From Zootoca vivipara (taxonomy: Eukaryota): a stretch of DNA of 64,000 nucleotides. A model generated the notes under the pieces. It searched no databases and was not told the DNA's origin. It worked only from the letters and a program-made list of their open reading frames with translations. The stretch covers positions 36,766,001-36,830,000 of the forward strand of contig NC_083288.1 in assembly GCF_963506605.1 (NCBI RefSeq), given 5' to 3'. This document shows, piece by piece, positions 21,301-64,000 of this stretch. The position numbers and the translations under genes were made by a program. Numbering within the stretch: position 1 is the first letter of the stretch; each line of letters opens with the position of its first letter.

Positions 21301-24300
21301 ACATCTAGTTAACTGTCCATTCTATCAGCCTTCTCAGAACCACTTCTCAACCTATTTACCTAATTTAAATTAAATTTATCTAATTTAATCTGTGCACACA
21401 CAGGAGAAGTGTGAAGCCCACATGTAGCCATATAACACATAACCACCACCCAAACTTAAATATTCCTGCATGTAGATGTGGGCAGACGTGCAGCTTCTGG
21501 ACACAGCAAAATGCACATATGGCTTGTCAAGTTTAATGGTTTGTATTACTTGCAAGTGCTTACTTTTCGTAAAACGTAAAGCAACCCCCCGGAGATCCCT
21601 GCCCCGCAAAAGATTTCTGTTACTTCCCCCATCCCATTGCACCAGTTAAAAAGGCACAGTTGGGGAACACAGTCTGAACCGAGTCCAAAACTCCTGGTTT
21701 CTACTCCTGCCCTCCTGAAGGATTAGACAGTCCCCAACACCCAAAGACCAAGAGAAATCCTGCCCAAGGAGACTATGCAGGGACTCCTTACCTCTCCAAA
21801 GCTCATCCGGTTTGCCTGCTTCCGGATTTCTGTTAGACCGAGACGCTCCTTCATCTTGCGATATCTGAAGGAGCAAGGAAAAGCATGTTTAAGATTGGCA
21901 GCTGAGAAATGAATGATGCCAGGACAGAGTGTTGCTGCCAAGAATGAAAGCAGTGTTTGGCATAAAAACAAATTCAGGCAGGGGACAAAGGGCTGATATG
22001 CCAGGATTCTTGGTTCATCTCAATGAGACATGCAAGTTTATGGAATTCTGAAACAACCTGACCTGACACTCTCCCACCTACATTAATGTGGAGATCAAAA
22101 CCTTCTTATACTCCACGCCTCCCACATATTCTGGCACAATTCTGGGCTCAAGAAACATACCAGTGACTGTATTATGAGGAAAAAATAAGTTTTAAAACTA
22201 ATGTTTTGAAAAAGCAAAACGAATTGTTGCATTAAAATCTCTTTTCCATGAAAAAAGAATATTTGATGGAAAAGATAAAATGCCAGTATTCTGGCTTGAT
22301 TTTAACAAGTATGTATATATTAAAAGTAGATCCAGGATTCCTTAATACAGTCGTACCTTGGATCTCAAACACCTTGGCTCCCAAACGATTGAAACCCAAA
22401 GTGAGTGTTCTGGTTTTCAAACAATTTTTGGAAGCCGGATGCCCGGCGCGGATTCCGTGGCTTCCGATTGGGTGCAGGAGCTTCCTGCAGCCAATCAGAA
22501 GCTGTGCTTTGGTTTCTGAACGTTTTAGAAGTCAAACGGACTTCCGGACTGTACTTATTTCCTAGCACACTTACCACCACCCTCCTGGCTGCCTCAGCCA
22601 GCTCAGCCAACTCGCCCTCCCAACCTTCCCCTGCCACAAGACATCTCTTCAATTCTCTCCCCCGCACCTGCGTCCTCCACGTTTCTTCCTTTGTCCATCC
22701 AAGGGTGCTGGCAGTGGCTTCACCTGCTTGACAGGAGGTGGCTCTTGCCACTTGTCAAATTTCCTTTCGATTTCCTCCTTGAGGTCATAGCCAACCTGAA
22801 TGGTAGCAGAAGAATAGAAGAGCAAAAAGTGCTTACAAAGCAGCCACCCCCTTGGAGCCCTCCTTTATGCCTCTCACACCAGGCACTCCCCCAGGATCCC
22901 AGAGCTTTTGCCTTGTACCACATACCTTCCCTTCAGAGCTCTCGTGAAAGCTGTCCACACGCGCTGCCAGCGTGCATTTTGCTGATACCAAGCGAGCTGC
23001 CTTCCTTCGCAAGTCCTGCAAGGAGGGAATCAAAGGCACATGTTGGCTGGTTGCTGTTAGGAAACCCGTGCACCAACTCAACAGAGAAAGGAGGAAGGGC
23101 AAACTCACAAACACACACACACACCTACCGGAGGCAACGACTGTACAATGTCGCTGTGATAGATGTAGCCAGTGTGAGGCAGCACCGAAGTGCTGGAAAA
23201 TCCAGACAGAGTCTTCCTCTGGGCCCCCAGAAGCATGATGTTGCAGGCTGGCATCTTGGAGAGGTTTGTGAGGCCACCGGCAATGCCTAGAGAGAAGGGA
23301 AGGCAAAATGGAATGAATGCTAATTGTGGGACCAAGAGCCAAGGTGGTTCGGGGTTTTTGATCAGCCAACCCTTGGTTTCTCAACTCTCCCTGGCCTGTT
23401 GGGATTTGCAAAAAAAGTTCCTCTCCTTGTGTGCAAGGAGAGCTCTTTGCTGTCCCTGACAACAGAGACCTGCCACAACTGATCATAGATCAACAACATG
23501 ACAGATGCTGCTAAATTTCTTGGACCATTTAATTAATGGCTTCAAGTTTATGATTTTTTTTATGTTAGCACGATTTTGTTTATGATTTTTTATGTTAGCA
23601 CTATTTTGTGAAATACTTTGGCAGCCTTTGCGTTTGGAAAGATGAACTGTAAAAATTAAATAATTTTCATATAGTAGCCAATCAGGATGGGTGTTCAACC
23701 CTTTCAGAGGGAAGACTTTACATTCCTTTCGGAGACTAGGGGCTTTCGTGTCCCTTTCTGCCAACTAAATTACACTAGAATAGACCCATTTAGATTAAAG
23801 GACTTAAGCTAGTCACATCCGTCAATTTCAATGAATCTGCTCCAATTCTGATACAATCCCAAGTTTTCATATTCTAATACGCAAGGAGCCAAACCCACAG
23901 AGCTCCATTGAGAGTCTCACCCATTATTTTAGCAGCAGTGGAGGCTCCCACAATGATGGACAAGTTGGGGGCGATGAAGGACATGCGGGACTCCACATAC
24001 TCGTAGATGCGGTGTTTAGACTGGTTCAGCTCCAGGGCCATGTCACAGGCCTCCTCAATGCGCTCCAATTCTTCCTCGGTTAACTGTTGCCTGCAACAGG
24101 AGTGAGGCGACACTTGAGGCCGAGATACATAGGTCTGGTTCACTATATCCGCACCATCGCTCCATGTGGTAAAGCCCAGAGCGTGGCATTTGTTTCAGAG
24201 CTCTCAGGACGTGCCTATATGCTAATATTCTATCTCTGAGCATGGATCCTTATGTAGCCGAAAATGGCACCATCCACACACACAAGATGGAGATGTCTGT

Positions 24301-43470: not shown

Positions 43471-46400
43471 ATGCCTGTTACTCTCCCCTTCTTGCTGCTT
43501 ACGATCTGTGAGTATAGTTTAGCTCAATGGGGTGGGAAGTATCCATTCAGCTGGCAGAATCAGAGGGGCATTGAACTCTGGGACTGCAGCAGCATCAGCA
43601 AGAGGAAGAGAAATGGCTAGGCTACCTTAAGATGTTTTTTGCCACCTGAGGAAACCAGGGTGGATGGGTAGTTAGATGAGAGCGAGGATTTGAGTTGTAT
43701 AGACACCGTGCATTTAAAGCGCATTCAAATCCCACATGCCCCAAATAATCCTGGGAACTGTAGACATGGGATCTTGAATCAGCATTCCTGGGTTTTGGCA
43801 ATCGGCCCTTCTCTCTTTTAGCCCTGCCGAAGCCCTCCATCTTCTGGCTCCAGGCTCCGGATGCAGATGAGAAGCACCACCTCCGATGTACGGCTCAAGG
43901 GGCATATTTCGGCAGCTGGTTCTACCTGTATCAGGGAGGGAGCCCAGAGGCCGTGGCTGAAAAGAAAGCCTTGCCCACCCAATCTGAAGTGACCTTTGAG
44001 GTACACAACTTTGGACCCAGGGAGCAATTCCGCTGCAGCTATGAGATCTGGGAGGCAGGGAAGCCCATTCGCTCCCCGCTCAGCAGCCCTGCAAACATCA
44101 CAGAGGGTAAGTGTTGGGCCGTAGAACTCAATGACCATACTAGGAAGGTCATGCACAGCATTAGGCCCAAAATGGTGCATGCAAGGAGGGTTGGTGTGAG
44201 AACCAATGGTACTGTGACTGGTCTAGGAATAGGACTTTATGGTTGTGAAGGACTGTCTTAGGGCAATGATGATGGCCTTTAGCAAAGATGAGGAACCTGT
44301 GACTCTCCCAACATCGTTGGATTCCATCAGTCAGGATCTTGAGCTTGATGGAGATGACCCTGTGAGGAAGGCTAATGAAGAGGTTGATTTTTTTAAAACA
44401 CTTGTTATGATTATTTAGGCTTGCTATACATCAGGAAAATTCTTGACATGTCTTGGTTTTCGCATGGAAAAATGGCATCGGGGGAATCTTGCCGAATCTG
44501 CAATGTCAGGGAAAACCCGGGTGTTTGGCAACGCGAAGGAAAAAGCAGCAGAAACAGCTCCAAAAGCTTAAAACCACTATTTTGGGGGAGGTTTTACTTA
44601 AAAAGCTCAACAACAAGGGTTTGTTCCCAAAAAGCTGAACAATTTTGGGTCTTCCTTAAAAAAAGGTCAACTTTGTGAGTGTCAGGAATATAGCAACGCT
44701 AGGATTGCTTATACTATACACTATACTATACTTAAATGATCAAGCTGCTATGAAATGTGTGCACTTTTAACATTTAGCATTTGCAAATCATTTGTACACT
44801 TTACAGTATAGATCTATTGAGTACTATGTATTTTATAACATATGATCAAGTTTCTGGTCACTATGGAAACATAAACATTTAAGCCTCTATGAAAATTTTC
44901 ACATACATTGCTAGTATTTGTACCATTTGGTATGGTCCTGCCATGCAGCAGCAGCTGGTTATATTATTGTTTGACATACAATTGCACTGGAATGTGCATT
45001 ATCTTTGTAATTAATTGATATCTTTAATGATTGATAGTTCATTTTATGATGGCTATAAATGTTGCAATGTTCCTATAATCACACAGAGTTATTTGCTGGA
45101 TTGTCATACTATATTTTGAAATGATTTAGTATTTGAGCTATTCTAAACATATACTGATTTGCATTTTTGTTGTTCGGCTGCAAGCTGCTTTGAGCACATT
45201 TATAATATAGATGTAAATAATAAACAGACAAGCACACAAAGGCAGTATGTTTGAACCCCTTCTCTTTCCAAAGGTTTGTCACTACTGTTTTTACTGTTGT
45301 AATTTTGCATACTATGTACCTTTAAAGCACATTCGAAGCACGTTCTTAACCTCCAAGAATTATGGGCACCTTAGTTTACTACTTACAGAGTTACAATTCC
45401 CAGCACCCTTAACAAACTACAGTGCCCAGACTTCTCTGAGGGTGTGTGTGCTTAAACATGCTTTAAAGGTATAGTGTGCACAGTGGTACCTTGGTTCTCA
45501 AACTTAATCAATTCCGGAAATCTGTTCCAAAACCAAAGCGTTCCAAAACCAAGGCACACTTTCCCATAGAAAGTAAAGCAAAACAGATTAATCCATTCCA
45601 GACTTTTAAAAACAACCCCTAAAACAGCAATTTAACGAATTTTACTATCTAATGAAACCATTGATCCATAAAATGAAAGCAATAATCAATGTACTGCACT
45701 ATAAAATAAATGTGACAGTATTGTAGATGATAAAAATTAAAATTATTTTTTTTTCTTACTTGCACTGATGATAGTCATTGTTTGGATGGGGGGCTTTTAT
45801 CCATTTCCGCAGTCACACAATCAATCAATCAATCAGTAGCTGAACACAGTCACAAAAACAAATTAACCGAAAAAGCCTCAAAAACAAAAACGCAAAACAA
45901 ACAGCAAAATTTAATCCATTCTGGAAGTCTGTTTGACTTCCGAAATGTTCAAAAACCCAGGTGCAGCCTCTGATTGGTGCAGGCACCCCAGAAACAATAG
46001 CCGACAGCCGCATCGGAGGTTCGGCTTCCGAAAAACGTTAGATAACCGGAACACTTACTTCCAGGTTTTTGGCGTTTGGGAACCAAGGTTATGTATTTTG
46101 ATATTAATTGGTTTTGGTTGTTTCATGAGGAATGTTTTAAAAATGATATTGATATTCGTTTTGGCCACCTTTTATTGCTATGCAAAAAGAAGCAACACAT
46201 TATTCTTTTTATTAACAGCAGAGAATAAGGTCCGAGACTCAGTAAACAGGTTTTCTCTCCCACTCACAGACCATTACCCCAAACCATCCATCTCTGCGAG
46301 CCCTGGTACTGAGGTCCTTGCAGGGCAGGACTGGACCGTTTGTTGTCAGGCTCCATTACTAGGGGTCAACTTTGTCCTCTACCAAGCCAGGGACTTTCGG

Positions 46401-49400
46401 ATAGAGGTCACTCCTCGAGGAGACTCTGACACCGCTGAATTCTCCTTGAAGAATGTCACCATGGCTGATGCAGGCCGATACACCTGTTATTACCACAGCA
46501 TCATAGAGCCCATCATCTGGTCAAATGCCAGTGACCCGGTGCAGCTGAGAGTTATCGGTGAGGAAACTTTTTGCTATCTTGGGGGCAGAATTTCCAAGTT
46601 TCTTTTTCTGTGCCTTCAGCAGCCATATGGTAAGCAGAAATTCAATTGGCTGAGTCTTTCTTTCTTTTTCTGGCATGGGAAAAACCAGAACCCATTGAAC
46701 TTCTGCTTGTTGTGGAGCTGCTAAAGCATCCCTGCCAGAAAAAAATAATAATGAGGGAACCTTGTTAGGTGGAGGAGTGGTTTTAGGGATGGGACTTGCT
46801 GGTTTGGGAGACAGCAGAGGTTGAGAGGAAGGGAACTGAACTGGTGCAAAGGGAAGCTGTTGTAAATATGGGCCATCATCCTTTCTGGATTAAGATTTAA
46901 GCAATATATTCATAATCAGAAAGCCAGTGTGATGTGTTGGATAGAGTGGCAGATTGGGACCAAGAAGGCCCGGATTGAAATCCCCCCCTTGGTCATGATG
47001 CTCATGGATAATAACCTTTGGCCACCCACTTTCTCTCGGCCTAATTTACCTCACAAGGGTGCTGTGGGAATAAAGGGGAGTACAGTGGTACCTCGACTTA
47101 CGAATAACTCTACTTACAAATGTTTCTACTTACGAACGAAGCTCCGCCCGCCATCTTGGATGCGGTTTAGATAGGATTTTTTCAACTTACGAATTTTTAG
47201 ATAGGGTTGCTTCGACTTACAAATTTTTTCTCCCAATGCATTCCTATGGGTTTCGACTTACAAATTTTTTCGACTTACGAATGTGTGTTCGGAACGCATT
47301 AAATTCATAAGTAGAGGTACCACTGTACAATGTGCATCAGCCTGAGCAGTGCTTTTTTTTTTCTTAAAAAATGTTTAGGGGTACTCTCATTTTCCTACTC
47401 ATATTGAAATTCGTCGCGCTGGTGAAGTTGGACGCAGGGACTTTGTGCTCCGAAGTCCCTGGCTTCGTGGAGGGGGGGGGAAGTCCGCAGAGCGAGCGGA
47501 CTCCCCGAAAAAACACCGGGTAGAGAGTCCCGGTGACATAGTGCCCAGCTGTTTGCTCCGGACGCGAATCCTCTGCTGCCCGAGAGCTCAGTAGAGCAAT
47601 CGAGAGCCAGCGGAGTGGAGTCGCGGGAGCCATTTTTGGGTTTCATCTTACCTCCTTGAAGTGAAGCTCCGAGTCCTCAGCCTGCAAGCGGCGGATTCTT
47701 CCAAGGAAATAAAAGACTTCTTCAAAGTAAGTCAAATCTCCATTCGGATCTTAAAAATTTTGAATTTGAAGATAGGAAGAGATTCTAAAGTAACGGAAGC
47801 CGATCTCTTCCAAATGGACAATCGGGAGGCGCATTAAATATTCCCAAGCCGAAAAGGGAAAACTTCTTTCAAGATTGCGGACCCGAGAGAAAGAAAGACT
47901 TTTCCAAACCTCCCCAGCCCCCGGTGTCGTTGCCCCTTGAGGTTCAGCAGCAACAAGGGGGAGGACGCTTTGACAGCTGTCAAAAGCTGTCAAATTGTTA
48001 AAGGATTAAGAAAGACGATTTTATTCCTGTGAATTGGAAAAATTGATTCAAAAGGTTTTAAAAGGATTTAAGTGGACTGTAAATTTGAAATCTGATGAGG
48101 TTAAAGACAAAGGATAAGAACAGCCAAGATGGAGCCGACAACGTGGTAGAGAGGAATTTTCCAGTACCCTTCTGCCCTTATCTCTGGTCTGCCTGTGGTC
48201 AAGTGAACTATGAAAACAAAATTCTCTCGAGCTTTCCAGGAGGCTGTGCTGGGCTATCTACAAACATGGGAAGATATCTACAAGGAAAGGCAATGCTTCA
48301 ATCCAACAGAAAAGGAGAATGAGGTGCAAGAGCAAGATTTAGAGGACAATTTTGATTATGAGATTGTGTGTGAGGAGCAACAATTTGAGGACAATTTGGA
48401 GACTGATTCAGACCATAAAAAATATGTGTTGGATGGTGAAAAACAAAGATCAGAACAAAGAGATGAGGCCGACAAGGAGAAGCAAAGTGAAGAGAAGATT
48501 GATGGAAGTGAAAATCCTGGAGAGACTGAAATGTTGAATGGTGTTAGTGAAGGGAGGGAAAGGCAGAAAGAGGGAGGAGCAGAGGTCTGGAAGTGGATGT
48601 GGGAAAGAATTGGTGTGGGGTAAAAATTTTAGTTTAAGGTACTTTTTTTGGTTTATGAACAACGGTGTCGGAATCTTGGCCTGTTAAAGGATATGCTGAT
48701 CCAATTGGGAGGAGGGACATGGGGGGGGGGAAGGAGAGATTTTTATAGTTTAAGGTTAAGAGCTTTCTGGAGGGAGTAAAAAGAATGGCTGAGGAAATAT
48801 GCTTAGAGTTTGTTTTTGAATAATTTTGGTGACCAGGAGGTGTTTGGGTGGAAAACTGCCTGTCTCCCCCTTCTTACTCTTGGTACCCAGTGGCAGGGGG
48901 TGCCTTGAGGGGAGAGGGAAGGGTGGAGGGAAACCCAGACACAAAAATGGAACCTTTTGACTGCTGGACTCCTCGGGCTACCCCAGTGGCAGGGGGGGGG
49001 GCTCAGAGGGGGACAGCATGAAGAAGGAGGAGGATTGTGTTAATATTATAAGAATAAGATTCTGAATTGGATTAGAAAACCCGCCATAACTATGTAAAGA
49101 GGTTGGGAAATCCAGGAGGAGGAGAGTCGTGGAAGCCATTAATATTTTTCCTTTTTCCTTTTTTTTCTTTCCTTTTTTTCCCCTTTTTATATTTTTGCTT
49201 CCCCCCCCCTTTTTTTCCTTGTTTTTCTTTTTTCCAGTACAGTGAAGAAATAGCTGGGGGATAAGCCAATCCCCAGAGATCCTCCGCCTTTGTCCTCTCA
49301 GTGGCAGGGGGGGGATGAGGGGGGAGGAAGGAGGGGGGAGGTCAAACCCAGCTTAAAATGGACCCCTTTGTTCCCCAATACCCATGGGTCTCACTGGTGG

Positions 49401-52400
49401 CAGAGGTGGGCTTGTGGGAGGAGGGAAAATGAAGGGACAGAGTTTATGTTGTATACTTTGTATGTGTTTTCTTTTTCTAAAAATTAATAAAAATTATTTT
49501 TAAAAATAAAAATAAAAAATGTTTAGGGGTACTCTCATTTTCCTACTCATATTGAAATACTGCCCCTCAGTTGAGGCCAAACTTAGATTCACAAAATGTT
49601 TAGGGATATGCGTCCCCCCAGAAAAAAAGCACTGAGCTTGAGCTCCTTGGAGGAAGGACAAGATTGTGCTAGCTAGACACTTCTCTTCAGGCATTATAAC
49701 TGAGAGTTAAGTAAATTAATACATGAGTGTGGGGTACCAGGGATGAGCACGATGGTTCCACCTCCACCCCCACCCCTATTACTGTCCCTGTTGCCCTCCA
49801 ACTAATGGAGAGTGCACTTCTGAAGCAGAAAGCCTCCCCCTCCCATGGAGATTCCCCATGTGCTTTAGGACATTACAGAAAGTTCCTCCCTACCTTATAT
49901 ACTAATAATAATTTATTATTTATACCCCACCCATCTGGCTGGGTTTCCCTAGCCACTCTGGGTGGCTCCCAACAGAATACTAAAAACACGATAAAACATC
50001 AAACATTAGAAACCTCCCTAAACAGCCCTGCCTTCAGATGTCTTCTAAAAGTCAGATAGTTGTTTATTTCCTTGACATCTGGTGGGAGGGTGTTCCACAG
50101 GGTGGGCGCCACTACCGAGAAGGCCCTCTGCCTGGTTCCCTGTAACCTCACTTCTCACAGGGAGGGAACCGCCAGAAGGCCCTCGGCGCTGGACCTCAGT
50201 GTCCTGGCTGAACGAAGGGGGTGGAGACGCTCCTTCAGGCCATTTAGGGCTTTAGGATATTGAAATATACTCGGAGTCGAGAGTGAATTTCATGCTCTTT
50301 ATTCAGCTCATATTCATCAAGGAGAAGAAGAGAAGACGAATGGCTCTTTTCCCAAAACCATCTGCTTATATACATTATTTACACAATGGGCCTTGCGTGA
50401 TTGGCTACTTCAGGGCTACACCTGTGGGCCAATTATATTGTGGATTGACTTCTGCCTGCAGCCTGATTGGCTGCTCCTACAGGCCAATCAGGTAGCAGAT
50501 TCACTTCTGCCAGCCGCCTGATTGGCTGCTCCAGCAGGCCAATCAGGTTGTGCATTCACTTCCACCTGGAGTTGGATTGGGTAGCTCCCGCTGATTCTGA
50601 ATCCTATTGTTCTAGGATTCAGCTCAGTACATAACAGATATCTAGTGCCATCTTCTACAAGTTGGAGAGTGACAAGAACTGCAACCTGGGAGTTGAGCTA
50701 GCAACAGTCATCCTCAGTGTTCCCCCAGCTTGCATACTTAACTCCTAATTATAATGCCAGCAGCCATCTTTCTATCTGCAAATATCTTCCCAATTTCCCA
50801 CAATCAAGGCACAGGAAGAGTTTCAGCATTAAAACTCATGGACTTGTTACTTTTTACATAGTTTGGACATAGAAAACTCCATAGAATTCCAGTAATCAAG
50901 AAAGTAGGTCTTGCAAAAGCATTTCTTGACTTGACAAAAGCTACAGTCACCTCATTTGTCCACCGACATTCAAGGACTCCCAAGCCCGAAAAGCAGATGA
51001 CAGCTAAAAATAAATTATGGGTTGTATTCAGCTAACTTTTACTCAGGATAGGCAACTGAAAGCAATGGAACTTCGTCACGGGCATTAATTTTAATAGGCC
51101 TTTGTTGAGTAAAGGCAGTTGAATGTAGCCCTATAACCCAAAAGTGAAACATTAATATTAATTGAACTGTACTCAGATTTTACTAAAATGCCTGATTCAT
51201 CCTGATCCTACAATGGAGGTTTTGTGCACTTGCACTTTTTGTATCGTTTAGTGTTGAATTCCCAATTTTGCACAAAGTGCCAAAGGTTGCGGGGGAGGGA
51301 AGGATAGGTTAGAGAAAGACTGGACTGGTCACATTTTAATCATGCCCACTCTTTTCTGTAAAGAATTGCAATTTATTTTGCTTACGCATTCCTTGCCCTT
51401 CCATTCGTCTGTTGCATCCTGGGGCATTCTGAGAGTCCTGCTTGATCCTCAGTCATCAACCTTGAATTATGGGAAATTCCCATAATCTTTGCGGTGGCTG
51501 TAAAGTACTAATCTTCTACTTACCGGTAGAATATGTATCTATGGCCACAAGGATTACAAATGTGTTTTTAAAAAAGAAAAAGAAAGCCAGTTCAACACTG
51601 AGCATCCCTTAAGTTATATCTTTTTGTTTTCACACATCTCCTTTCCAGATGCAACTGTGGTCCCCAATTACCTGGAGGTGTTGGTGGACTCTGCAGGAAG
51701 ATATCGAGTGAATTGCTCAGTCCCTTCTGCTGCTGAGGGCTGGTTTTATCTTTACCAAGGTGGGCAGCTCTTTGCTGAAACCAGAGCTTGGCAAGATGGG
51801 GAGATTGCAAGCTTCAACCTCACAGAAGAAGCCATTAACATCACCATAGGAGAGCTGAGCTGCCAATATAAGGAATATCAGCTCAATGACACTGAAGCGT
51901 GGACACAAGGTGAGTCCAGGGGGGATGGGAGAAGTGTACACTAGCAGAGAGCTAGCCTGTGCACCTTTATTTCCCTCAAAGAATTATGGGCACTGTAGTT
52001 TATCCCTCGCGGAGTTACAATTCCCAGCAAATTACAGTGCCCATAATTCTTTGAGGGAAATAAAAGTGGTTTGAATGTGCTATAAAGGTATAGTGCACAT
52101 CCTTAGGTGACGATGATAATTGTACCATTAATGGTGCTTTACAGTATAAAAGAGGATAAGTCCCTGGTCCCAAGGAGCTTCCAATCTAAAAATGGATTTG
52201 AATATAGAAGCATAGAAGATATTGTGAAGTTGAGTGGATGCCCAGAAAATGAATGACTGGCTGGAGAATCAAACACAAGCATATTCCCACAGACAATAAC
52301 TTTGATGGGTGTGGGGTGGGTGGAACGGACAACACATACTGTTCTGTTTCGGCAGAACAAGGACAAGCAGCAAAACAAGGTTTACCACTCCATTCTTTGG

Positions 52401-54583: not shown

Positions 54584-57500
54584 ATGGAGTGGCTGTATTG
54601 TGCAGGTAGACTTAACTGAGTAGAGGGCATGGAGGGTCACCTGGAGGTGAAGGCAGGAATTAATATCTGAATTGTACAGTTGTTGTTTTTTTAAGTAAGT
54701 GTTGGGCCTGGAGGCAAGGGCACTATTTGGACTCTGCTTCAGGTGGGATATTGAGCTGAAAGCTGTTTTAAGCATTAGCTGTACCTCTGCCAGTTTGTGA
54801 GGTGGCACTTAAATTTGAAAGCCTCAGTTCCATTAAGCACACTTCAAAAACACTGTCTCCTCCTTCATAAGCTCAAGTCCCCAGAACTCCCAAACATTTC
54901 TTCCATCTGATAATTCCCCATCTATCCAGAGGTCTTATATGACCTATAGCGCCCTCTTCAAGATTTCTCCTCCACAAAGGGGCAGAGACAGAAGAAACTT
55001 GCTTTAAATCTGCCTAGTTCGATTTCTTCTGAACTGGATTCTGATTGCAACTCTTTTTTTAGACAAGCCTATCCAATTTTATAGAACGTTGATATGTGTT
55101 TAGTTTGTTTTCTGAATGTTTTAAATATTTGTTTTAACTGAGTTTACTGATAATTTTCTTTCTCTTTTTTCACGTGTGTGTTTCTACCATCAAGCAGTGT
55201 AGTTTCTTTTTCCAAACGGTATATAAATTTTGTAACATATATAAATAATTATGAAGACCTTCTGGTATGTCCTATAAAATAAATATGTGTTAACCTAGTA
55301 ATGAAAAGAATGGTGTGACAGCACCAGTCGTACCTCTTTGGAAAGTGTTCTAAAGTTGGGATGTATGCATTACAAACTTGTGCTAGGGAAAGCATGCAGG
55401 GAAGGTCTTCAACCAAAAATGTTAATTTTAAAATGAATGACAAGTGACTGGAACATCTATTGATAGTAACATTTGATAATAATTGTATGCGACAACAAAG
55501 GACTGGACGAGGTAACTTTTTGGTGGATTTATCTGGTTGACTGACCAAACCCAAAGAGTGCCCACTAATGGTTCCTAGTCATCCTTCCAAAAAAGAAAAG
55601 AAAAAAAGAAAGGGACAAGTGAGGTACCACAGGCTTCTGTCCTAGGCCCATTGTTGTTCAGCCTCTTTATAAACGACTTTGATGAGCATCCCCTCAATTC
55701 CTTCATCCAATTTCGAGGTGACACCAAACCGGGAGGGGTAGCCAATGTCACTCAGGATGGAATCGGGATTCAGTATGACCTTAAGAGATTGGAGAACTGG
55801 GCCAAAACTAACAAAATGAATTTCATTAGGGGCAAATGTAAGCTTCTACATTTAGGCAGGAAAAACCAGCTGCACCAATTTAAGATGGGGGACACTTGAC
55901 TTGCCAGTAGTAGATGTGAAAAGGATCTAGGGCAGGCATCCCCAAACTTCGGCCCGCCAGATGTTTTGGACTACAATTCCCATCACCCCTGACCACTGGT
56001 CCTGTTAGCTAGGGATCATGGGAGTTGTAGGCCAAAAAATCTGGAGGGCACAGTTTGGGGATGCCTGATCTAGGGGTCTTAGTGTTTGTCCAGCTCTCCT
56101 CTTTTCCCCCTGTAACAACATAGGGCTCGGCTACTACCTTTCAAAGTTGCTTGTTGTGCAGGTAAAGTGCCCCTTCTATTGCAATGGGCCAAGGAGGTGG
56201 GGCTATGGCTTTAAATAAGTTGTGATTGGGTCTGAGTATGGCCCTTTTTCAAGCTACACCCTTTTGGGTTAATCGTCTCTTGCCACACCCATACAAATGC
56301 AGGTTTATTAAAGGGGCCTCAGTAGTGAAGCTCAACCCCCCCCCCCACAGACACACCTTAATTGTTTGTGGTTTTCTTCAGCTTGAAAATATTTTACTTT
56401 TCTTAGCTTTTAAAGAAATAGATTTGTCTGGCTTGGAGGAGAATGCGGGTGGGCTTTGTGCTCCCCACCCCTAGTACCCTGACTTACAAGGGTAGCTGAA
56501 TTTTCTGGAAAAGAGTCGAGGGTTAGGCAAGCCTGGGGAGGGAGGTGAGAGGATGTTATGAGCTGAGGCCCAGATTAGGACCATGGAAAAACCGCTCCTG
56601 GAAGTTGTGGTAAGATCCACAGAAGAGGACCTTTGTCAGAATCGCCCAGCGCCGGCCTTTGAGGAAGAACAACCTGTTTGTAAAAGACTACGGATGGATT
56701 CGCCAGTTTATCCAGCGGAGTCAGAGGCCCCTCTACCACCAGAGAGGAGTATGTGGAGCTATTCTAATTGTGGGGGAACTGTTTTTTTCCCCTTTAAAAT
56801 TGATTTAAAGATGGGGGATGCAGCAGGAGTGTGATATGATGGGCGTTGCAAAGATGGATTGTCTCCATGGAGGTAGTAACTCCTGTTTATTAACGTGTAT
56901 TCAAGATGACTTAACGTTAGGCCCCATCTGCGCTAAACATTTTAAACACTTTAAACAGGTTTCCAGCAATGACTCTTTGAGATCTGTAGTTTAAGTGTGC
57001 TGAGAGTTGTTTAGAGACCTCCCCCCTCCTTTCCCTTCTGAGCTACAATTCCCAGAGCTCCTTAGGAAGGGGGATTGAATGCTTATTTATTATTTACTTT
57101 ATACATTTATTATCCCACCTGTTAAACCACTTCGGCTTTGTTAAGCCACTCTGGGCTTAAAGCAACCTACTACTGTACTGTGCAAATGGGGCCTTCCTTT
57201 AGTTATTCATAACAGCAGCCTCTGGCTTAGGGGTCAACGGGCAAAAGGCCTTGGAGCCAAATTCAGCCTCTGAGCTGGGACACCCGCAGCTTCTCCAGTG
57301 GTAAGAGAAGTTGTGGGGGAGATGGGTTTGTGTGGCGATAAGATACGTCTGTCGCTGATTTTGCTAGATGAGAGGAGGGGCCCCAGTCCGCATTTGCTCC
57401 TCACGTAAAACTGGTTGTCCCCTTTTCTTATGCTTCGGGTGGCTTGGATTAACCTAAAGAAGCGTGAGCGGAAGGTGAAAATGCATTTGTGCTCCTCCGG

Positions 57501-60500
57501 GAACAATTGTGCCAGAGTTAATGGCAGGGTACTTAGGCTGTAGTGCCATAATGTATGGGGGGAAGTAGGGTTGCATTTTGGTATAAAGGAAACGGTGCGT
57601 GAGGAAAACATAGGCCGTACTCTTTGTTTCCAGGTCCAGTTCAAGGGTGCTCACATTAATGTTGAAAGCCCTAAATGACTTAGGCCAGGCACCCCCAAAC
57701 TGCGGCCCTCCAGATGTTTTGGCCTACAACGCCCATGATCCCTAGTTAAGAGGACCAGTGGCCAGGGATGATGGGAATTGTAGTCCAAAACATCTGGAGG
57801 GCCAAAGTTTGGGGGTGCCTGACTTAGGCCCCAACGACTGCTTCTTTCCCTACAAACCCTTCAGGGCTGTTAAGACCAGCAGATGGGGCCCTCTTGGGAG
57901 TTCCACCTCCCTCAGAAGTTTGGGGTGGCTTTCCACATGGAAAAATAATGAAATCTCATTATTGAATAAGAATAAGAATAATACTGTAATTAGTTTTGTG
58001 TGTGTGTGTGTGTGGATCAGGGAAGGGCATTCTCTGTGGCAGCCCCAAGTTGTTGAACTTCCTCCCCTGGCTTCTCCACAATTCAGCTCCTGGCAAATGC
58101 TGCAGACACACTTTTTTTACCCTGGGCTTTGCCTCATGAGATAGATGTGTGTTCCCAGGGTCCACCCTAGTCCTGTAATTTTAATTGCTTTAACTGTTGT
58201 TTATTTGGAATTTTAAATACTGTAGTTGTCATTTGCCCTGGGATCTGCTGGTGAAGGGCAGGGAATAAATTTAGTAACAATCATGATGTTTAATCACGAT
58301 CAAGATGCAGAAGGCCATAAAAAAAGGTCTCGCTTGAGACTAAGCCTGTGTGCAATTGGAGGAACTCGTGGATTTGGTGTTGGTTTTCTTCATACAGTGG
58401 TCTTCTGCTAAGGAAGAAATAGGCCTTCTCCGACAGGAATAGGCTTTCTGCTAGTGGAAAGACACTTTTAGAATCCAACTCAATACATATGTAATGTGAA
58501 AATAGGGATTCCAGACATTCTTGACTTTTTAATGTTTTGTATCCAAATGATTTGTTGCTTCTACTCCAGCCTGCCCTACAGCGTCCCCTCCAGCCTGCTC
58601 CACAGCTCCGCCTTTGTCCACACACCAGTGCAAGAAACCTTCACGCAGGGCTGCTTATCATCCCTTTGATTTCACCTCGGACGAGCTGGACCCTGCCTAT
58701 GAGTGGCCAAGGGAATCTTCTGCAAGGAAAAGTAAGACGCATGGAGGAGCTGACTAATAATGTTTGTATGCTCTTTGGAAGGGACCCTGGTGTGTGAGCA
58801 TGGAAAAATAGGAGGTCTAAAACGTGTGGTTTTTATGCTGGAATGGGAGAGGTGGCGAGGGTAAGAAAAGAAAACTGGTCTGTTTGAGGAGGTGTGGCCT
58901 ACTGCTACACATTCAAGGGAATGAAGTGGGGGAATGGACTTCATCAGATTACAGGAGGGTGGGGTTGGTTATCCAATTTTGCATACTTATCCTTTAAAAA
59001 ACACCCACCCATCCCAGGAAATAGAACGCATAGGCACTTGCTGTGTGCCCTTTCCAGCTATGCTGAATTTATCATCATGGATAAATCTTAACATGGGGAA
59101 ACTTTCAAAAATGTGATGGTTTACTTGCAGTGCGAAGAGGTACACTTTGTCCTCCCTGTTCAGTACACTCATCACCTCGTTCTGTGTCGAGCAGGCTGGT
59201 CATACCTTCCCCACCTTCAGCAGGTGTGCAGCAGGAAGAAAATTATCCAGCTTTCTGAAGAATACCCTCATCCTAATGAAGCCTGTATCAGTTTAATTTC
59301 TGATTGGAGGTTCTGTAAAGACTTCCTTAACTGAAGGGAGGCCTTCAGCAGTTGCAATGGGAACTGAAGCCTAATGAGGCTAAGGGAAAAGAAATACTAT
59401 AAAAGTTAGGAGTCCTGTGACTTTGATAGTTTGTAGTATAGTCGAGAAATAAGAGGAATTTGGCATGAAGAGCACAAAAACTTGTGTTGCAAGTAAAGCA
59501 CTGGTTCCACAATTAGCACCCACTGACAAATGGACTAGCTGTTCCAGGTAATTGAGATCCATTCCAAACAACACTAAAAAGTAGGGCTGTGGGGCCACTC
59601 TGTCCAAATTCTAGATCCTGAGCCAAATTGGGCTGATGGGCTGGAGCAGCTTGAGGCATCCCCAGGTCCACCCAAAGTGATCTAGAGCTGTCCAAAGGGG
59701 TGGTAATCGGGTGGCAAGGAGTAGGATGGTGGAGAAGAAGCAAATGCAGACAGCCTGTCTGTCTTCCCCTGCCCTTGGACCACATATAAAATAGGGTTTA
59801 AATCCATAATTAAACAATGTGCTAGAGTCCCAGTCTTGGGCCCAGATCCAGGTCAAGTCTGCCCCAGGACAGATCTGGAACACTGGATAGGAGGGTGCAT
59901 GCACAGTCCTACTTAAAAGCCTTTTCATAATCGAGGCCTCTTTGTATCGTTCAGGTGGTGCGGATGTGACCCCTCTCCTCCGAAGCACTCTGGGCCAGTT
60001 TCCTTTAGGCTTGCGTCTGGATAAGCTGGAGGCCCTGGTGTGGAAGGAGCACAAGGTCAAGCTGTGGAAACTCTGTTTGGAGCGAGGCTACAGTGACAGC
60101 CTGAAGTTCTTGCAGGTGGTACCTGGGATCAGGCTCAAACCCTCAGGCAAAGGGACTTTCCGGTGCCTTGTGCAGTTGGACCCAGGTGAGTGTTTCTCTC
60201 CTCCAGCCTGACCGTGTGTTCTCTCAGGAGAGCTACAGGACCCACAGCCTGGCAACCTTTGGCCTTAATTTTATGCTTTTCTAGGTCATTGAAGGTTTGT
60301 ATCTGATCTCCAAGAAGCAACTTGCAAATAATCTACAGGCCTAATTTTATTCAGAGGTTGTCAGTGCAACACCTGCTCGCCCCATGGTGCCTGCCATAGC
60401 ATCATACGGTTCCTGCAAAATGTCTCAGTAAATATCATCTCACAAAGTGTCTCAGTAAATATCACCTCAAAAATCCATAATGCATGAGAGACTGATTGCT

Positions 60501-61480
60501 GTACCTGCTCATTTCCTGTTTGCAATGGCTTTGTTGCTCTCTTACTTCGAACACATCCCCTTAAATGTGCCCATATTTTTCGGGATGCCAGGATTGGACA
60601 CCCTCCTTCCCATCCCTTCTGAGCAGAGGAGAGATTCAGCGAGCTTTTCACTGTGAGTTGTATGGCAGCGGCTGATACACGTTCTTTTGTGAGGCATGCC
60701 CACTGCTTTTTGTGATCTGGGCTCATTTAATGCTCCTTTAGATGTGGCATCCCTTTCATGTTATACCACGCCGTGACAGCACTTCCTCATAATTCCACAT
60801 GTGGCCACTGGCCCTAAAAGGTTGGTGATTCCTGTTAGTCTGACTGATTTAAAGGGATCTGGGTGAGAAGCAGTGGGTGGAGCACATGCTCTAAACGAAG
60901 AGGGTCCTGTGATCAGTTCCCCAATATTTCTAGCACAAAGGAATCAGATAGCAACTGATGGCAAAGGCCTCTGCCTGAGATGTGGAAAGGCCACTGCAGG
61001 CAGTGTAGACAATAAAAGGCCTGTAGTCTGACCTGGTATAAGGATGCCTTCTTCTTTTGTTTGGTTTTTTAACCCTCCTTTTGAACAGCAGGAATAAACA
61101 AACCCCAATATTTAAAAGCCCTCCCAGTCCCCAAGATTAAGAGTACTCTGTACCATGCCTCACTCCACTTGCTTTTCAAAAGTCTTGCTTTTATATCCGG
61201 CCTTTAGTACAGAATGGAGCTCAAAGTGGTTTGTGTGGGGTTTCAAAATGGTCTCCCATCCAGGCACTCCCGAGACCAAGATCTGCTTAGTTCCAGAAAA
61301 GCTGCTGTTGATGCCGTCTGGAGGTGGCAATATCCTTCTGCTCAGCTTTTGTACACCTCCAGGCCACTTCTCTCTGCTGGTTTCTCCACTCTGCTTTTCC
61401 CATGTTGCTTTAGTCTTCAGTAACTCTCAGTCCCAGTGGGTTTGCACCACCCATTTTGGGGAAACCCCTGAGGCTTAACT
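54584..61480 (+). CDS. Tentative gene model around the LOTUS exon: 54584-54605, 56124-56161, 57231-57300, 58570-58731, 59131-59223, 59955-60185, 61421-61480; 3' end not resolved
   Basis: The GT-AG segments join in phase without stops (225 codons), but apart from the LOTUS exon they are low-complexity Ser/Pro-rich sequence. The first three exons are the least certain. Confidence 0.4.
55495..56083 (+). mobile_element. CR1 LINE reverse-transcriptase fragment
   Basis: Encodes VPQASVLGPLLFSLFINDFD..., DTKPGG..., DLKRLENWAKTNKMNF..GKCKLLHLGRKN; interrupted by a MITE. Confidence 0.85.
55933..56067. mobile_element. hAT MITE inserted in the CR1 fragment
   Basis: CAGGCATCCCCAAAC TIRs and perfect 8-bp TSD atctaggg. 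Confidence 0.88.
57686..57821. mobile_element. hAT MITE
   Basis: CAGGCACCCCCAAACT TIRs and perfect 8-bp TSD acttaggc. Confidence 0.88.
59955..60185 (+). CDS. Coding exon encoding a LOTUS (OST-HTH)-like domain of an unidentified gene
   Basis: Clean 231-nt phase-1 exon (ttcag|...CCAG|GTGAGT) encoding GADVTPLLRSTLGQFPLGLRLDKLEALVWKEHKVKLWKLCLERGYSDSLKFLQVVPGIRLKPSGKGTFRCLVQLDP. The pattern LRS.L....GL....L......GY.....FL..VP.I fits recalled TDRD5/TDRD7 LOTUS domains. Confidence 0.7.
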
Positions 61481-64000
61481 GTACGTGGGCAGGAATGCAT
61501 TTTATTCCACTGGGTGTTATTGTTGCAAAGGCTGACTTTAAACAAAAAAAAAGAGCTTGATGCTTAGTGAAATCTCCAAAGATACTGGCTGTGTACATGC
61601 TATATACATTTAAAGTGCATTTCAAAGCACATTCTTTCCCTCAAATAATTCTGGGCACGGTAGTTCTCTAAGGGTTGCTGGGAATTGTAACTCAGAGGGG
61701 CAAACTAGAGTGCACAGAATTATTCGAGGGAAAGAATGTGTGCTTTAAACATTTAGTGTGTGCATAGTTGTCAGGGGGCAAGGCTTCACTGTCCTCCAAA
61801 GGAAGCTGCCTTAAACAGAGCCAAACCATCCAGCTTAGCATTACCTGCACTGACTAGCAGTTGTTGTCCATGTTTCAGTCGGGACATTCCCAGCCCTACT
61901 TGGTGTTGACTTCTAGAACTTCCACCTCAAGGTTGGCCTTGTTTGCTGCATGGCTCTCGGATGAGCTGGCAATGTTTTGAGAGTTACAGTTGCACAGAAG
62001 GAGGTGACAGAATTCTGGTTATTCTTCTCGATGTAGTTAAGCTAGCACCAGAGGGAGAAATTGTGTATATACATATATACACAAACATGACTTTTTTAAA
62101 AAAAAATGCAAGGGGAGCGTTGGAATTTGGTCCTCCCCCACCTGCAGTCTGAACTGGTGTAGTCCAGAAAATTATACCATTTCATTTTGTGTTTTATAGA
62201 AGAATGGCTGTTCTGGTTTAAAGAATATAGTGCATCCTCAAAGAGGAATGGTTGCAACACAGCATCACAGCACACATTTTACATGCAGAAGGTCTCAGGT
62301 AGACAATCCTGGTCTAGATGGGTATAAAAAGCAGCTTCCTATGCAGATGGATCACTAGTCTGAAGGTAGCTTCCTATCTTTGGATTTCTGCTTTATGGCC
62401 CTTGGATATCTTAAGTGTTTTGTCTTCTGCCCCTCCCTTTTATAGCTGGCCCTTATCGTTTGTCCTATCAGCCTGCAAACACAGCAAGCCAGAAACTGTG
62501 TGGCACTGCAGGAACTGTAACGAGTTCTGCTTTGCCTTTGCAAGGATCCTGATGCCGTGAAAGAAATTGGATTCCAGCATCAGGTAGACTTTGTTGAACT
62601 GTGCTGGTTTAATTATAACAAGCTTCTCCCCCCCCAAAAAAAGTGATTGCATTGGGTGCCCTGCATTACTACCTTGATTCGTCAGACTTGAGAGTTGTTG
62701 GTCTTGAAAAGAGGTGCCTTTAGGGATCAAACCTCTAGAGGGAGCAACTTCCATATTTTTGTTTGTAACCCCCCCCCCCCTCACCATTTTTGTGGCATGT
62801 TAATAACCTAGCACTTTTATGCCTGGTGTTAATAGCTAATGGAGGAAATTACTTAAAGGAGCTTTGGAAATGGATTCCCAGCACTGCAGCACACCAAGCG
62901 TTTATTTAACAGTAAGGGAAAGGAAGACAACTTGAACTGTGGAAGCCTGTGTAATTTGTGTGTATCCTTTGCGCTACTTTGTAAGGAACACTTAGTATGC
63001 GGCCGGTGGGCATCTTCCCTCGGGGCTATTGCCTTTATCAAAAGGGTGGGGGAAGATAGTGTCTCTGATTAGTGATGCAATCATTGGTACTAGCCAATAG
63101 ATTTGTGCAGCCACAGTCTGAACTGCACTAAATACTTGAATTGGTGCAGTGATGGGATGGGGTGGACGTGTTGCATGATAAAATATCCTGCATCTTAAGT
63201 GCTGGAGAACTGCTTTCCCTGTAATGCAGACATTTCTTTGAAAGAAGGCTTCTGAAATCCTAGGCCTGGGCCACACTGCCGCAAAAAATGTGGACTTGTA
63301 CCTGCCTGTCTCCCCAATAATGGGAGGGGCATCCAGATGAGACCCTTCCCATCCCAGTGTTGTCTTAGAGGGGAGACAAGCAGGAAGGGTTTTTAGTTGT
63401 TCCTTGGAAAGTCCAAAACAGCCAGGATCAAAAAACTCTGCATTTGAAGGGGGAAGGATATAGGACAGCATCATGTGGGAGGTTCTCCATTAGTAGGGAG
63501 ATGGGTGCAAGTCCAGTTTAAACAAATCCTGAGATTCTTATTGGCTGACAAATATGAAGCTGGGGGTTCTACCTGCAGGATACAAGATCTAGGCCCTCAA
63601 AGGACTCGCCTGCTTTTAAAAGGGGCGCAAGAGCGAATATTTTGCTGCCTCAAGCTGCAATTCCACTATCGGCATAGACGAAGCAACTGGAGAATCTGCA
63701 CCTTGCTGGAATTTTCCCTTCTCCACAACAACTGAAGAGATGAGAGCTCTCTTGAATCTGGATCCTAGCAACCATAATTCACTTCAATCCATGCTGATAA
63801 ATTGTTCTATGATGCAACAGTATGTTATTTTTTCCTTTGTCAATGAGTCTCAGGCATCTCTTCCCACTTGCTTTAGGACACTGCAGTGGCAGGAACACTG
63901 GAGCCTTTGAACAAAGGGGTAATAGTCACAGATGGACCGGCCTTCAATAAATCATCTGGGTTGTGCCTGTCCTCCCTTTTTGTAGCTTAGGTTCAGGCAC

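Follow-up and report, generated by a model that had tools for sequence, protein, structure and literature searches.

A Probable Three-Exon LOTUS-Domain Gene of Zootoca vivipara and Its Relationship to an Uncharacterized Multi-LOTUS Family

The stretch of DNA analyzed in this work (64,000 nucleotides of Zootoca vivipara, contig NC_083288.1, positions 36,766,001 to 36,830,000; hereafter, the window) most probably embeds a real and intact gene formed by three coding exons (56583-56748, 58570-58731, and 59955-60185) and a short variable tail, coding for a protein of ~195 residues with a disordered front and one minimal LOTUS domain. According to this reading, the gene is a one-domain member of an uncharacterized multi-LOTUS family and would encode a small RNA-binding adaptor. 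LOTUS proteins (such as Oskar, TDRD5, TDRD7, MARF1, and the worm MIP-1/2) organize germ granules, PIWI-interacting RNA (piRNA) pathways, and oocyte mRNA decay.

Gene Structure and Exon Chain

The exon chain was derived from a tblastn search of orthologue proteins against the window, which is free of N. The exons of the window were searched singly, and only the seven segments proposed in an earlier note on this DNA were joined, for a local check of their reading frame. The coding exons are the following:

56583..56748, plus strand: coding exon 1, ATG, 55 codons plus 1 nt (MEKPLLEVVV...KRLRMDSP...PPER), donor GT at 56749-56750
58570..58731, plus strand: coding exon 2, phase 1, a linker rich in Pro and Ser plus the conserved acidic-aromatic motif YHPFDFTSDELDPAYEWPRE
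59955..60185, plus strand: coding exon 3, phase 1, the entire predicted LOTUS domain, 76 residues, basic, net charge +6, isoelectric point (pI) 9.8

Exon 3 is open from position 59957 and encodes the 76-residue peptide GADVTPLLRSTLGQFPLGLRLDKLEALVWKEHKVKLWKLCLERGYSDSLKFLQVVPGIRLKPSGKGTFRCLVQLDP; it is bordered by an AG acceptor (ttcag/GT) and by a consensus donor (CAG/gtgagt). Since a 76-codon open frame is not rare by itself in 64 kb, the open frame alone would be insufficient, and it is the homology that makes the exon real. Indeed, lacertid orthologues are 93-96% identical to its peptide according to phmmer, with Lacerta agilis reaching 96% over the exon. The peptide of exon 1, MEKPLLEVVVRSTEEDLCQNRPAPAFEEEQPVCKRLRMDSPVYPAESEAPLPPER, followed by one base, shares 45-84% identity (tblastn, E-value down to 3e-24) with the orthologues of Lacerta, Podarcis, Crotalus, and Paroedura, and the figure is 80-84% when the interval is matched with orthologue N-termini. 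Exon 2, read in frame 3 (CPTASPP...YHPFDFTSDELDPAYEWPRESSARK), is 87-89% identical to exon 2 of lacertid orthologues (tblastn), and its acidic-aromatic motif is kept across squamates. The codons split by the two introns are restored by joining the A of exon 1 to the CC of exon 2 (ACC, Thr) and the A of exon 2 to the GT of exon 3 (AGT, Ser), and both residues match those of the Lacerta agilis protein XP_033025202. All three coding exons have open frames and intact canonical splice sites.

The 231-nt exon 59955-60185, on which the earlier note was centered, is thus borne out by its quoted peptide, its splice sites, and 58 phmmer matches, and the coding nature of segment 58570-58731 is sustained by the identity with the orthologue exon 2. 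The other five segments that had been joined to them (54584-54605, 56124-56161, 57231-57300, 59131-59223, and 61421-61480) have no counterpart in ~120 family proteins, the blastp matches being at chance level. The first exons proposed there were wrong, the true first coding exon (56583-56748) having been overlooked, and neither the Ser/Pro-rich insert 59131-59223 nor the exon 61421-61480 is supported by the relatives. The hydrophobic N-terminus, for which a membrane anchor had been envisaged, was built from these unsupported mini-exons; given that five segments lack a counterpart, it is to be considered an artefact of joined tiny open segments. Lastly, more domains had been expected beyond 64 kb; orthologues across squamate groups end 0-25 residues past the LOTUS domain, and therefore no further domains are expected there.

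The Fold of the Domain

The model of exon 3, built by AlphaFold2 with a 14-sequence alignment, consists of four helices and a beta hairpin (predicted local distance difference test, pLDDT, 84). The LOTUS fold is a winged helix of ~75-80 residues, with helices and a beta hairpin at its C-terminal end. In the comparison with the PDB carried out by Foldseek, ranks 1-28 were all occupied by LOTUS domains (Oskar, TDRD7, TDRD5, and Tejas), with template modeling (TM) scores of 0.67-0.78, a probability of 1.0, and E-values from 7e-3 to 3e-2. VIA-align, a search independent of Foldseek, also placed LOTUS domains in all of its top six positions among 48,161 chains; these were TDRD7 (Z 11.6, with a root-mean-square deviation, rmsd, of 1.4 over 72 residues), TDRD5 (11.2), Tejas (11.0), Oskar (8.7), MARF1 (8.6), and LOTUS3 of TDRD7 (8.3), followed by rows with Z <=7.5 that were mostly generic winged helices. 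Moreover, a language-model search (ESM Atlas) gave the top place to OST-HTH clusters (score 0.92, with 193 of the 256 features in common), and its listing includes a chordate cluster named "DUF7515/OST-HTH/LOTUS domain-containing protein".

As for the primary structure, the domain is homologous to four proteins (P0009, P0018, P0021, and P0033; E-values from 2.5e-37 to 7e-16) that carry, like the squamate long proteins, both the OST-HTH domain (PF12872) and PF24359, the repeat matched in these OST-HTH-bearing relatives being of the DUF7515 type. A sequence search of the PDB with exon 3 returned nothing relevant. Taken together, the predicted fold and the family context support the interpretation of the domain as a LOTUS winged helix, reached without a Pfam profile match.

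Relatives and Phylogeny

The phmmer search of the 76-residue peptide in a set of 1.84 billion cluster representatives (threshold E<=1e-3) retrieved 58 matches, 41 of which were at E<=1e-10 (the best at 5e-77). A first group includes proteins of ~190-230 residues bearing a single match at their C-terminal end and reported as "uncharacterized protein LOC..." or "hypothetical protein". These short forms are known from at least 12 squamates, among them lizards, geckos, and snakes (Lacerta agilis, Podarcis raffonei, P. muralis, Varanus, Liasis, Crotalus, Naja, Anolis, Sceloporus, Phrynosoma, Lerista, Gekko, Paroedura, and Sphaerodactylus), with a domain identity of 55-70% in snakes, Varanus, iguanians, and geckos; no source assigns the short gene a domain or a name. 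The second group is represented by proteins of 600-2,060 residues harboring 2-10 copies of the domain and found in frogs, salamanders, caecilians, turtles, alligators, and squamates. Their repeats correspond to the Pfam family DUF7515 (PF24359, 36-82 bits), and, of the long proteins that were scanned or listed, most have a genuine OST-HTH domain (PF12872), which was not found in the turtle proteins scanned. These long forms are uncharacterized, and Tudor, NYN, and RRM domains are absent from the relatives scanned. Among the 30 of the 58 phmmer matches that were looked up by name, none was from a bird, a mammal, or a fish.

In the maximum-likelihood tree of 72 domain copies, one clade (support 97/94) unites all short squamate domains with the third LOTUS of the Pelodiscus protein LOC112543921, and the repeats of the squamate long paralogue fall outside it. 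The nearest relative outside squamates is, in other words, LOTUS 3 of a three-LOTUS softshell-turtle protein, which also has the MEPWLEVVVV...KRPRLSPP...MEWE block of the squamate N-terminus. The clade with Pelodiscus repeat 3 and the shared motif block therefore indicate that the short gene goes back at least to the split between squamates and turtles and is not a recent fragment. When the long relatives and the Pelodiscus protein P0070 were compared with the window by tblastn, one LOTUS exon only was found, with no upstream OST-HTH exon and no more repeats. Judging from the sequences, the short gene can be regarded as a one-domain member of an uncharacterized LOTUS family of amphibians and non-avian reptiles (turtles, crocodilians, and squamates). 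The long and the short gene are taken to lie on the same chromosome in six squamate species (sequence records of equal length).

These data also bear on what had been proposed earlier about the nature of the gene. The LOTUS identity is upheld by the agreement between fold searches and family context, the predicted structure being a winged-helix LOTUS whose best matches are all LOTUS, and the conservation of the gene is apparent from the intact orthologues found from geckos to snakes. Homology, domain content, and the tree all set it apart as a separate family rather than an orthologue of TDRD5, TDRD7, or MARF1. The suggestion of a separate reptile family is correct as far as its separateness is concerned, but the restriction to reptiles is too narrow, since amphibians have the long form.

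Some further observations concern copy number and annotation. In Crotalus horridus the short gene is present twice, on different long contigs (P0022 and P0093), and Lerista has two gene models with an identical protein (P0122), which indicates that duplication of the short gene can occur. Members of the family carry misleading names in databases (P0090, P0052, P0080, P0097, and P0012), such as "Phosphoribosylformylglycinamidine synthase subunit PurL" in Varanus, "mucin-2-like" in Pantherophis, "proline-rich protein 36-like" in Podarcis, [quoted passage not shown] in Zootoca, and "germ cell-specific 1-like protein 2" in Alligator. In the searchable literature, nothing was found for DUF7515 or for the LOTUS domain in squamates, and the family is undescribed there.

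Protein Architecture and Possible Role

The full-length fold was modeled on the Lacerta agilis orthologue (P0006), used as a stand-in for the protein of the window. In this model, residues 1-111 are disordered (pLDDT ~50) and residues 113-187 form the LOTUS domain (pLDDT ~90), with no helix after the hairpin. It is known that extended LOTUS domains possess a C-terminal extension required for the binding of Vasa, which minimal LOTUS domains do not have (Jeske et al., PMC5458760). The C-terminal helix of the extended type is absent after the last strand in both models, and the orthologue tails are not conserved; since the helix needed for Vasa binding is lacking, the domain is best regarded as one of the minimal type.

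The disordered half is ~50-60% identical between most squamate groups (62-70% for the domain) and embeds three motifs, i.e., an N-terminal M-E/Q-K-x-x-LEVVV, a KR-x12-KRxR-x-x-SP, and an acidic-aromatic Y-x-P-x-DFTSDELDPAYEW. In our reading of the sequence, KR-x12-KRxR fits the classical bipartite nuclear-localization pattern. The orthologue domains are basic (net charge from +3 to +10, with a pI of 9.6-11.3 in 16 of 17). According to a previous report, LOTUS domains bind G-rich and G-quadruplex (G4) RNA across phyla and prefer RNA G4 over DNA G4 (PMC7498356).

On this basis, one may imagine that RNA is bound by the LOTUS domain, which is basic and of the minimal type and for which the binding of G-rich or G-quadruplex RNA sets the precedent, whereas the disordered half would mediate entry into the nucleus and offer a motif on which a partner docks. 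The protein would then act as a small RNA-binding adaptor rather than as an enzyme or a membrane protein, RNA binding being the likeliest role of the basic domain, by inference only.

Comparison with Known LOTUS Proteins

MARF1 combines a NYN nuclease, an RRM, and tandem minimal LOTUS domains, whereas TDRD5 and TDRD7 have one or more LOTUS domains followed by Tudor domains. The best structural matches of the window domain are those of TDRD5, TDRD7, and Tejas (Z 11.0-11.6; Oskar 8.7), with an rmsd of 1.4-2.1 over 68-72 residues; however, the identity is as low as 16-19%, and the gene of the window has neither Tudor domains nor the conserved C-terminal alpha-5 extension. An identity with TDRD5 or TDRD7 was ruled out, as the orthologues are ~200 residues long and without a Pfam family, and the frame ends just after the domain.

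With MARF1, the gene shares a predicted LOTUS fold of the minimal type, without C-terminal extension (mouse MARF1, Z 8.6, 26% identity over 62 residues), but the short orthologues are single-domain and without NYN nuclease or RRM. MARF1 was not named among the 30 of 58 sequence matches looked up, and neither PF19687 (MARF1_LOTUS) nor NYN was matched in the 18 proteins scanned. The identity with MARF1 was also ruled out, given the single domain and the absence of NYN, RRM, and MARF1_LOTUS from the short and long relatives scanned.

The long multi-LOTUS proteins have a homologous domain (E-values from 1e-20 to 5e-77, 30-43% identity); examples are LOC114583091 of Podarcis muralis, LOC142024733 of Carettochelys, and LOC117367388 of Geotrypetes, recorded as "uncharacterized" or, in UniProt, as "HTH OST-type domain-containing protein". 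Besides the domain, turtle long forms exhibit ahead of their repeats an acidic-aromatic motif, LDPxGFPxPELW, that recalls the squamate DELDPAYEW. They differ in that they are 1,100-2,060 residues long and have an N-terminal PF12872 domain, 2-10 DUF7515-type repeats, and long Pro-rich tails, compared with one domain and ~195 residues in the gene of the window. In the turtle proteins P0001, P0002, and P0003, LDPxGFPxPELW recurs in a Pro-rich stretch (N-terminal 230 residues read), and it may be a linear motif coupled to the domain.

A last comparison is offered by Caenorhabditis elegans MIP-1/EGGD-1 and MIP-2, which are described as having two LOTUS domains and disordered regions and as recruiting Vasa (GLH-1) (PMC8331183). 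The likeness consists of a LOTUS domain plus a disordered region with no enzymatic domain, and it is an architectural resemblance only. By analogy, this architecture suggests a possible scaffold or adaptor role.

The 3' Ends and Alternative Exons

Three endings are possible after exon 3, that is, the read-through of its donor and two alternative exons. These features, together with a possible alternative first exon, are listed below:

60186..60211, plus strand: read-through tail, ..DP-GECFSPPA-stop (stop at 60209-60211) if the donor at 60185 is unused; open reading frame 59942-60211
62836..62909, plus strand: alternative 3' coding exon, ANGGNYLKELWKWIPSTAAHQAFI-stop, AG acceptor, counterpart in Lacerta agilis isoform X2
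63579..63592, plus strand: alternative 3' coding exon, GYKI-stop, counterpart of the tail of Lacerta X3 and Podarcis X4
57821..58066, plus strand: possible alternative first exon, with counterparts in Podarcis raffonei isoforms X1, X3, X4, and X5; tblastn 77% identity, E-value 1e-33

A similar read-through type of ending is present in Varanus, Sceloporus, and Podarcis X3 models. The exon 62836-62909 is matched by tblastn (E-value 5.5e-11) and, at 87% identity, by blastp (E-value 1.9e-18, Lacerta agilis X2); this lacertid-specific exon might give a short helix where the extended LOTUS domains have their extension. The match of 63579-63592 is weak (tblastn E-value 0.14-0.33), and an in-frame stop shortens this tail in the genome analyzed. 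The interval 57821-58066, which abuts a repeat copy (57673-57827), probably lies outside the conserved protein.

Weighing of the Alternative Explanations

Several data weigh against the interpretation proposed here. Exon 3 has no Pfam family at E<=10, OST-HTH (PF12872) and DUF7515 included, and none of the 14 short-family members matches PF12872, so that the OST-HTH profile match that the earlier note would lead one to expect was obtained neither for the exon nor for its 14 relatives. DUF7515 is touched by three of the 14 short orthologues, the best with an E-value of 0.0093 and under threshold (the gathering score of PF24359 is 27 bits). The family profile finds no solved LOTUS sequence in the PDB, and the profile-profile alignment (hhalign) of the short-family domain with the N-terminal PF12872-type domain of the family is in register but weak (E-value 0.043, probability 1%). 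The first basic pair of the motif resembling a nuclear-localization signal (NLS) is a nearly invariant KR, present in Lacerta, Podarcis, and most squamates, whereas it is NR here (56640-56645, codons 20-21 of exon 1). As for expression, the region 55900-61899 was compared with three RNA-seq runs labeled as this species, each read to ~6% (1.1 billion letters), and with contigs from one relative. The depth was zero on every exon within this region, and no splice junction was supported, so the earlier exon chain gained no spliced read either. This zero depth is no evidence of silence, because, with the tissue unknown and ~6% read, a gonad-restricted gene would be missed. Finally, what is shown here is only the predicted fold and the conservation of the protein, whereas RNA binding, nuclear localization, and the existence of a partner are inferred.

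The absence of reads is also an argument for the idea, which we consider very unlikely, that the gene is silent or decaying in Zootoca vivipara and that it is a relic split off a long multi-LOTUS gene, with no current function. In addition, the 3' tails are variable and weakly conserved, the 63579 tail has a premature stop, the NLS-like motif shows the K-to-N change, and the window's own protein is absent from the database matches. However, the reading frame is open in all three coding exons and their splice sites are canonical, intact ~200-residue orthologues with conserved motifs and a domain identity of 55-70% are found from geckos to snakes, the clade is older than the squamate-turtle split, and the RNA-seq runs are limited as said above. 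A functional gene might instead code for a germ-granule factor with an extended LOTUS domain, binding and activating the DEAD-box helicase Vasa/DDX4 like the first LOTUS of TDRD5, TDRD7, Tejas, and Oskar. Extended LOTUS domains do occupy the first three places of the structural comparison (Z 11.0-11.6), and in lacertids the alternative tail ANGGNYLKELWKW (62836-62909) might fold into a short amphipathic helix past the domain. Nevertheless, the models show no helix past the hairpin, most orthologues end a few residues past the last strand, the lacertid tail is not conserved beyond lacertids, and the C-terminal extension is required for Vasa binding (PMC5458760); hence this role appears clearly unlikely.

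The bipartite-NLS-like motif and the basic domain would also suit a nuclear DNA-binding winged-helix protein, that is, a small transcription or chromatin factor and not an RNA binder, all the more so as forkhead, MarR, and H1 winged helices are retrieved at Z 6-7. LOTUS domains, though, stand 1-4 Z units above the DNA-binding winged helices, with the full domain covered at an rmsd of 1.4-2.1, the sequence relatives carry OST-HTH, and LOTUS domains preferred RNA G4 over DNA G4 (PMC7498356), which makes a DNA-binding factor highly improbable. A gene of seven exons, with a hydrophobic membrane anchor at the N-terminus and more domains past the end of the window, is scarcely credible. Its segments do join in frame with GT-AG borders, but for the three short ones this is expected by chance, because they are only 22-70 nt long; besides the lack of counterparts for five of the seven segments in ~120 relatives, the orthologues begin with MEKP.LEVVV and end after the domain, and no reads fall on the four unsupported segments located within 55900-61899 (54584-54605 being outside). 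We therefore retain the three-exon gene with a single minimal LOTUS domain as the probable solution.

Significance

The analysis shows a further vertebrate LOTUS family that is absent from the searchable literature and whose members are anonymous or misnamed in databases. It is true that neither the fold nor the general role is of a new kind and that the relatives already carry anonymous gene models; still, a number of LOC genes receive an annotation and the exon model of the window is set right. Moreover, the squamate short form is a compact disordered-plus-LOTUS protein that lends itself to expression and to assays of RNA or helicase binding.

A broader and more doubtful proposal, which we put forward only tentatively, is that amphibians and non-avian reptiles might keep an unstudied LOTUS branch, comprising long forms with up to ten repeats and a one-domain nuclear-targeted form, that acts in germ-cell or oocyte RNA control, e.g., in the handling of G-quadruplex RNA or in granule scaffolding. 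If this were true, the germline RNA machinery would have, besides TDRD5, TDRD7, and MARF1, a layer confined to certain lineages, and the short squamate gene would act either as a dedicated adaptor or in competition with the long form.

Expression and Genomic Context

For Lacerta and Podarcis, the number of isoforms recorded at NCBI suggests that transcript evidence may exist in those genera. In the region 55900-61899, the only parts covered by reads are two repeat copies (55920-56060 and 57673-57827) that flank exon 1, with thousands of reads on both strands and a hundreds-fold depth; these reads presumably come from copies located elsewhere in the genome. The two copies are 81-83% alike and internally palindromic, one arm pair measuring 123 nt with 91% complementarity, and they resemble a miniature inverted-repeat transposable element (MITE) or a short interspersed nuclear element (SINE).

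With regard to the neighborhood, an exon for a Nop (small nucleolar RNA-binding) domain lies on the minus strand within 22836-23486 (~22.9-23.0 kb), which fits PRPF31, and immunoglobulin (Ig)-domain exons are located upstream of the LOTUS gene on the plus strand (45933-46721 and 51624-51941), one of them being weakly like the Ig domain of HIDE1/C19orf38. The PRPF31-like Nop exon and the Ig-domain exons therefore show the LOTUS gene to flank the region of the leukocyte receptor complex, in agreement with the position at the edge of this complex that had been assigned to it earlier.

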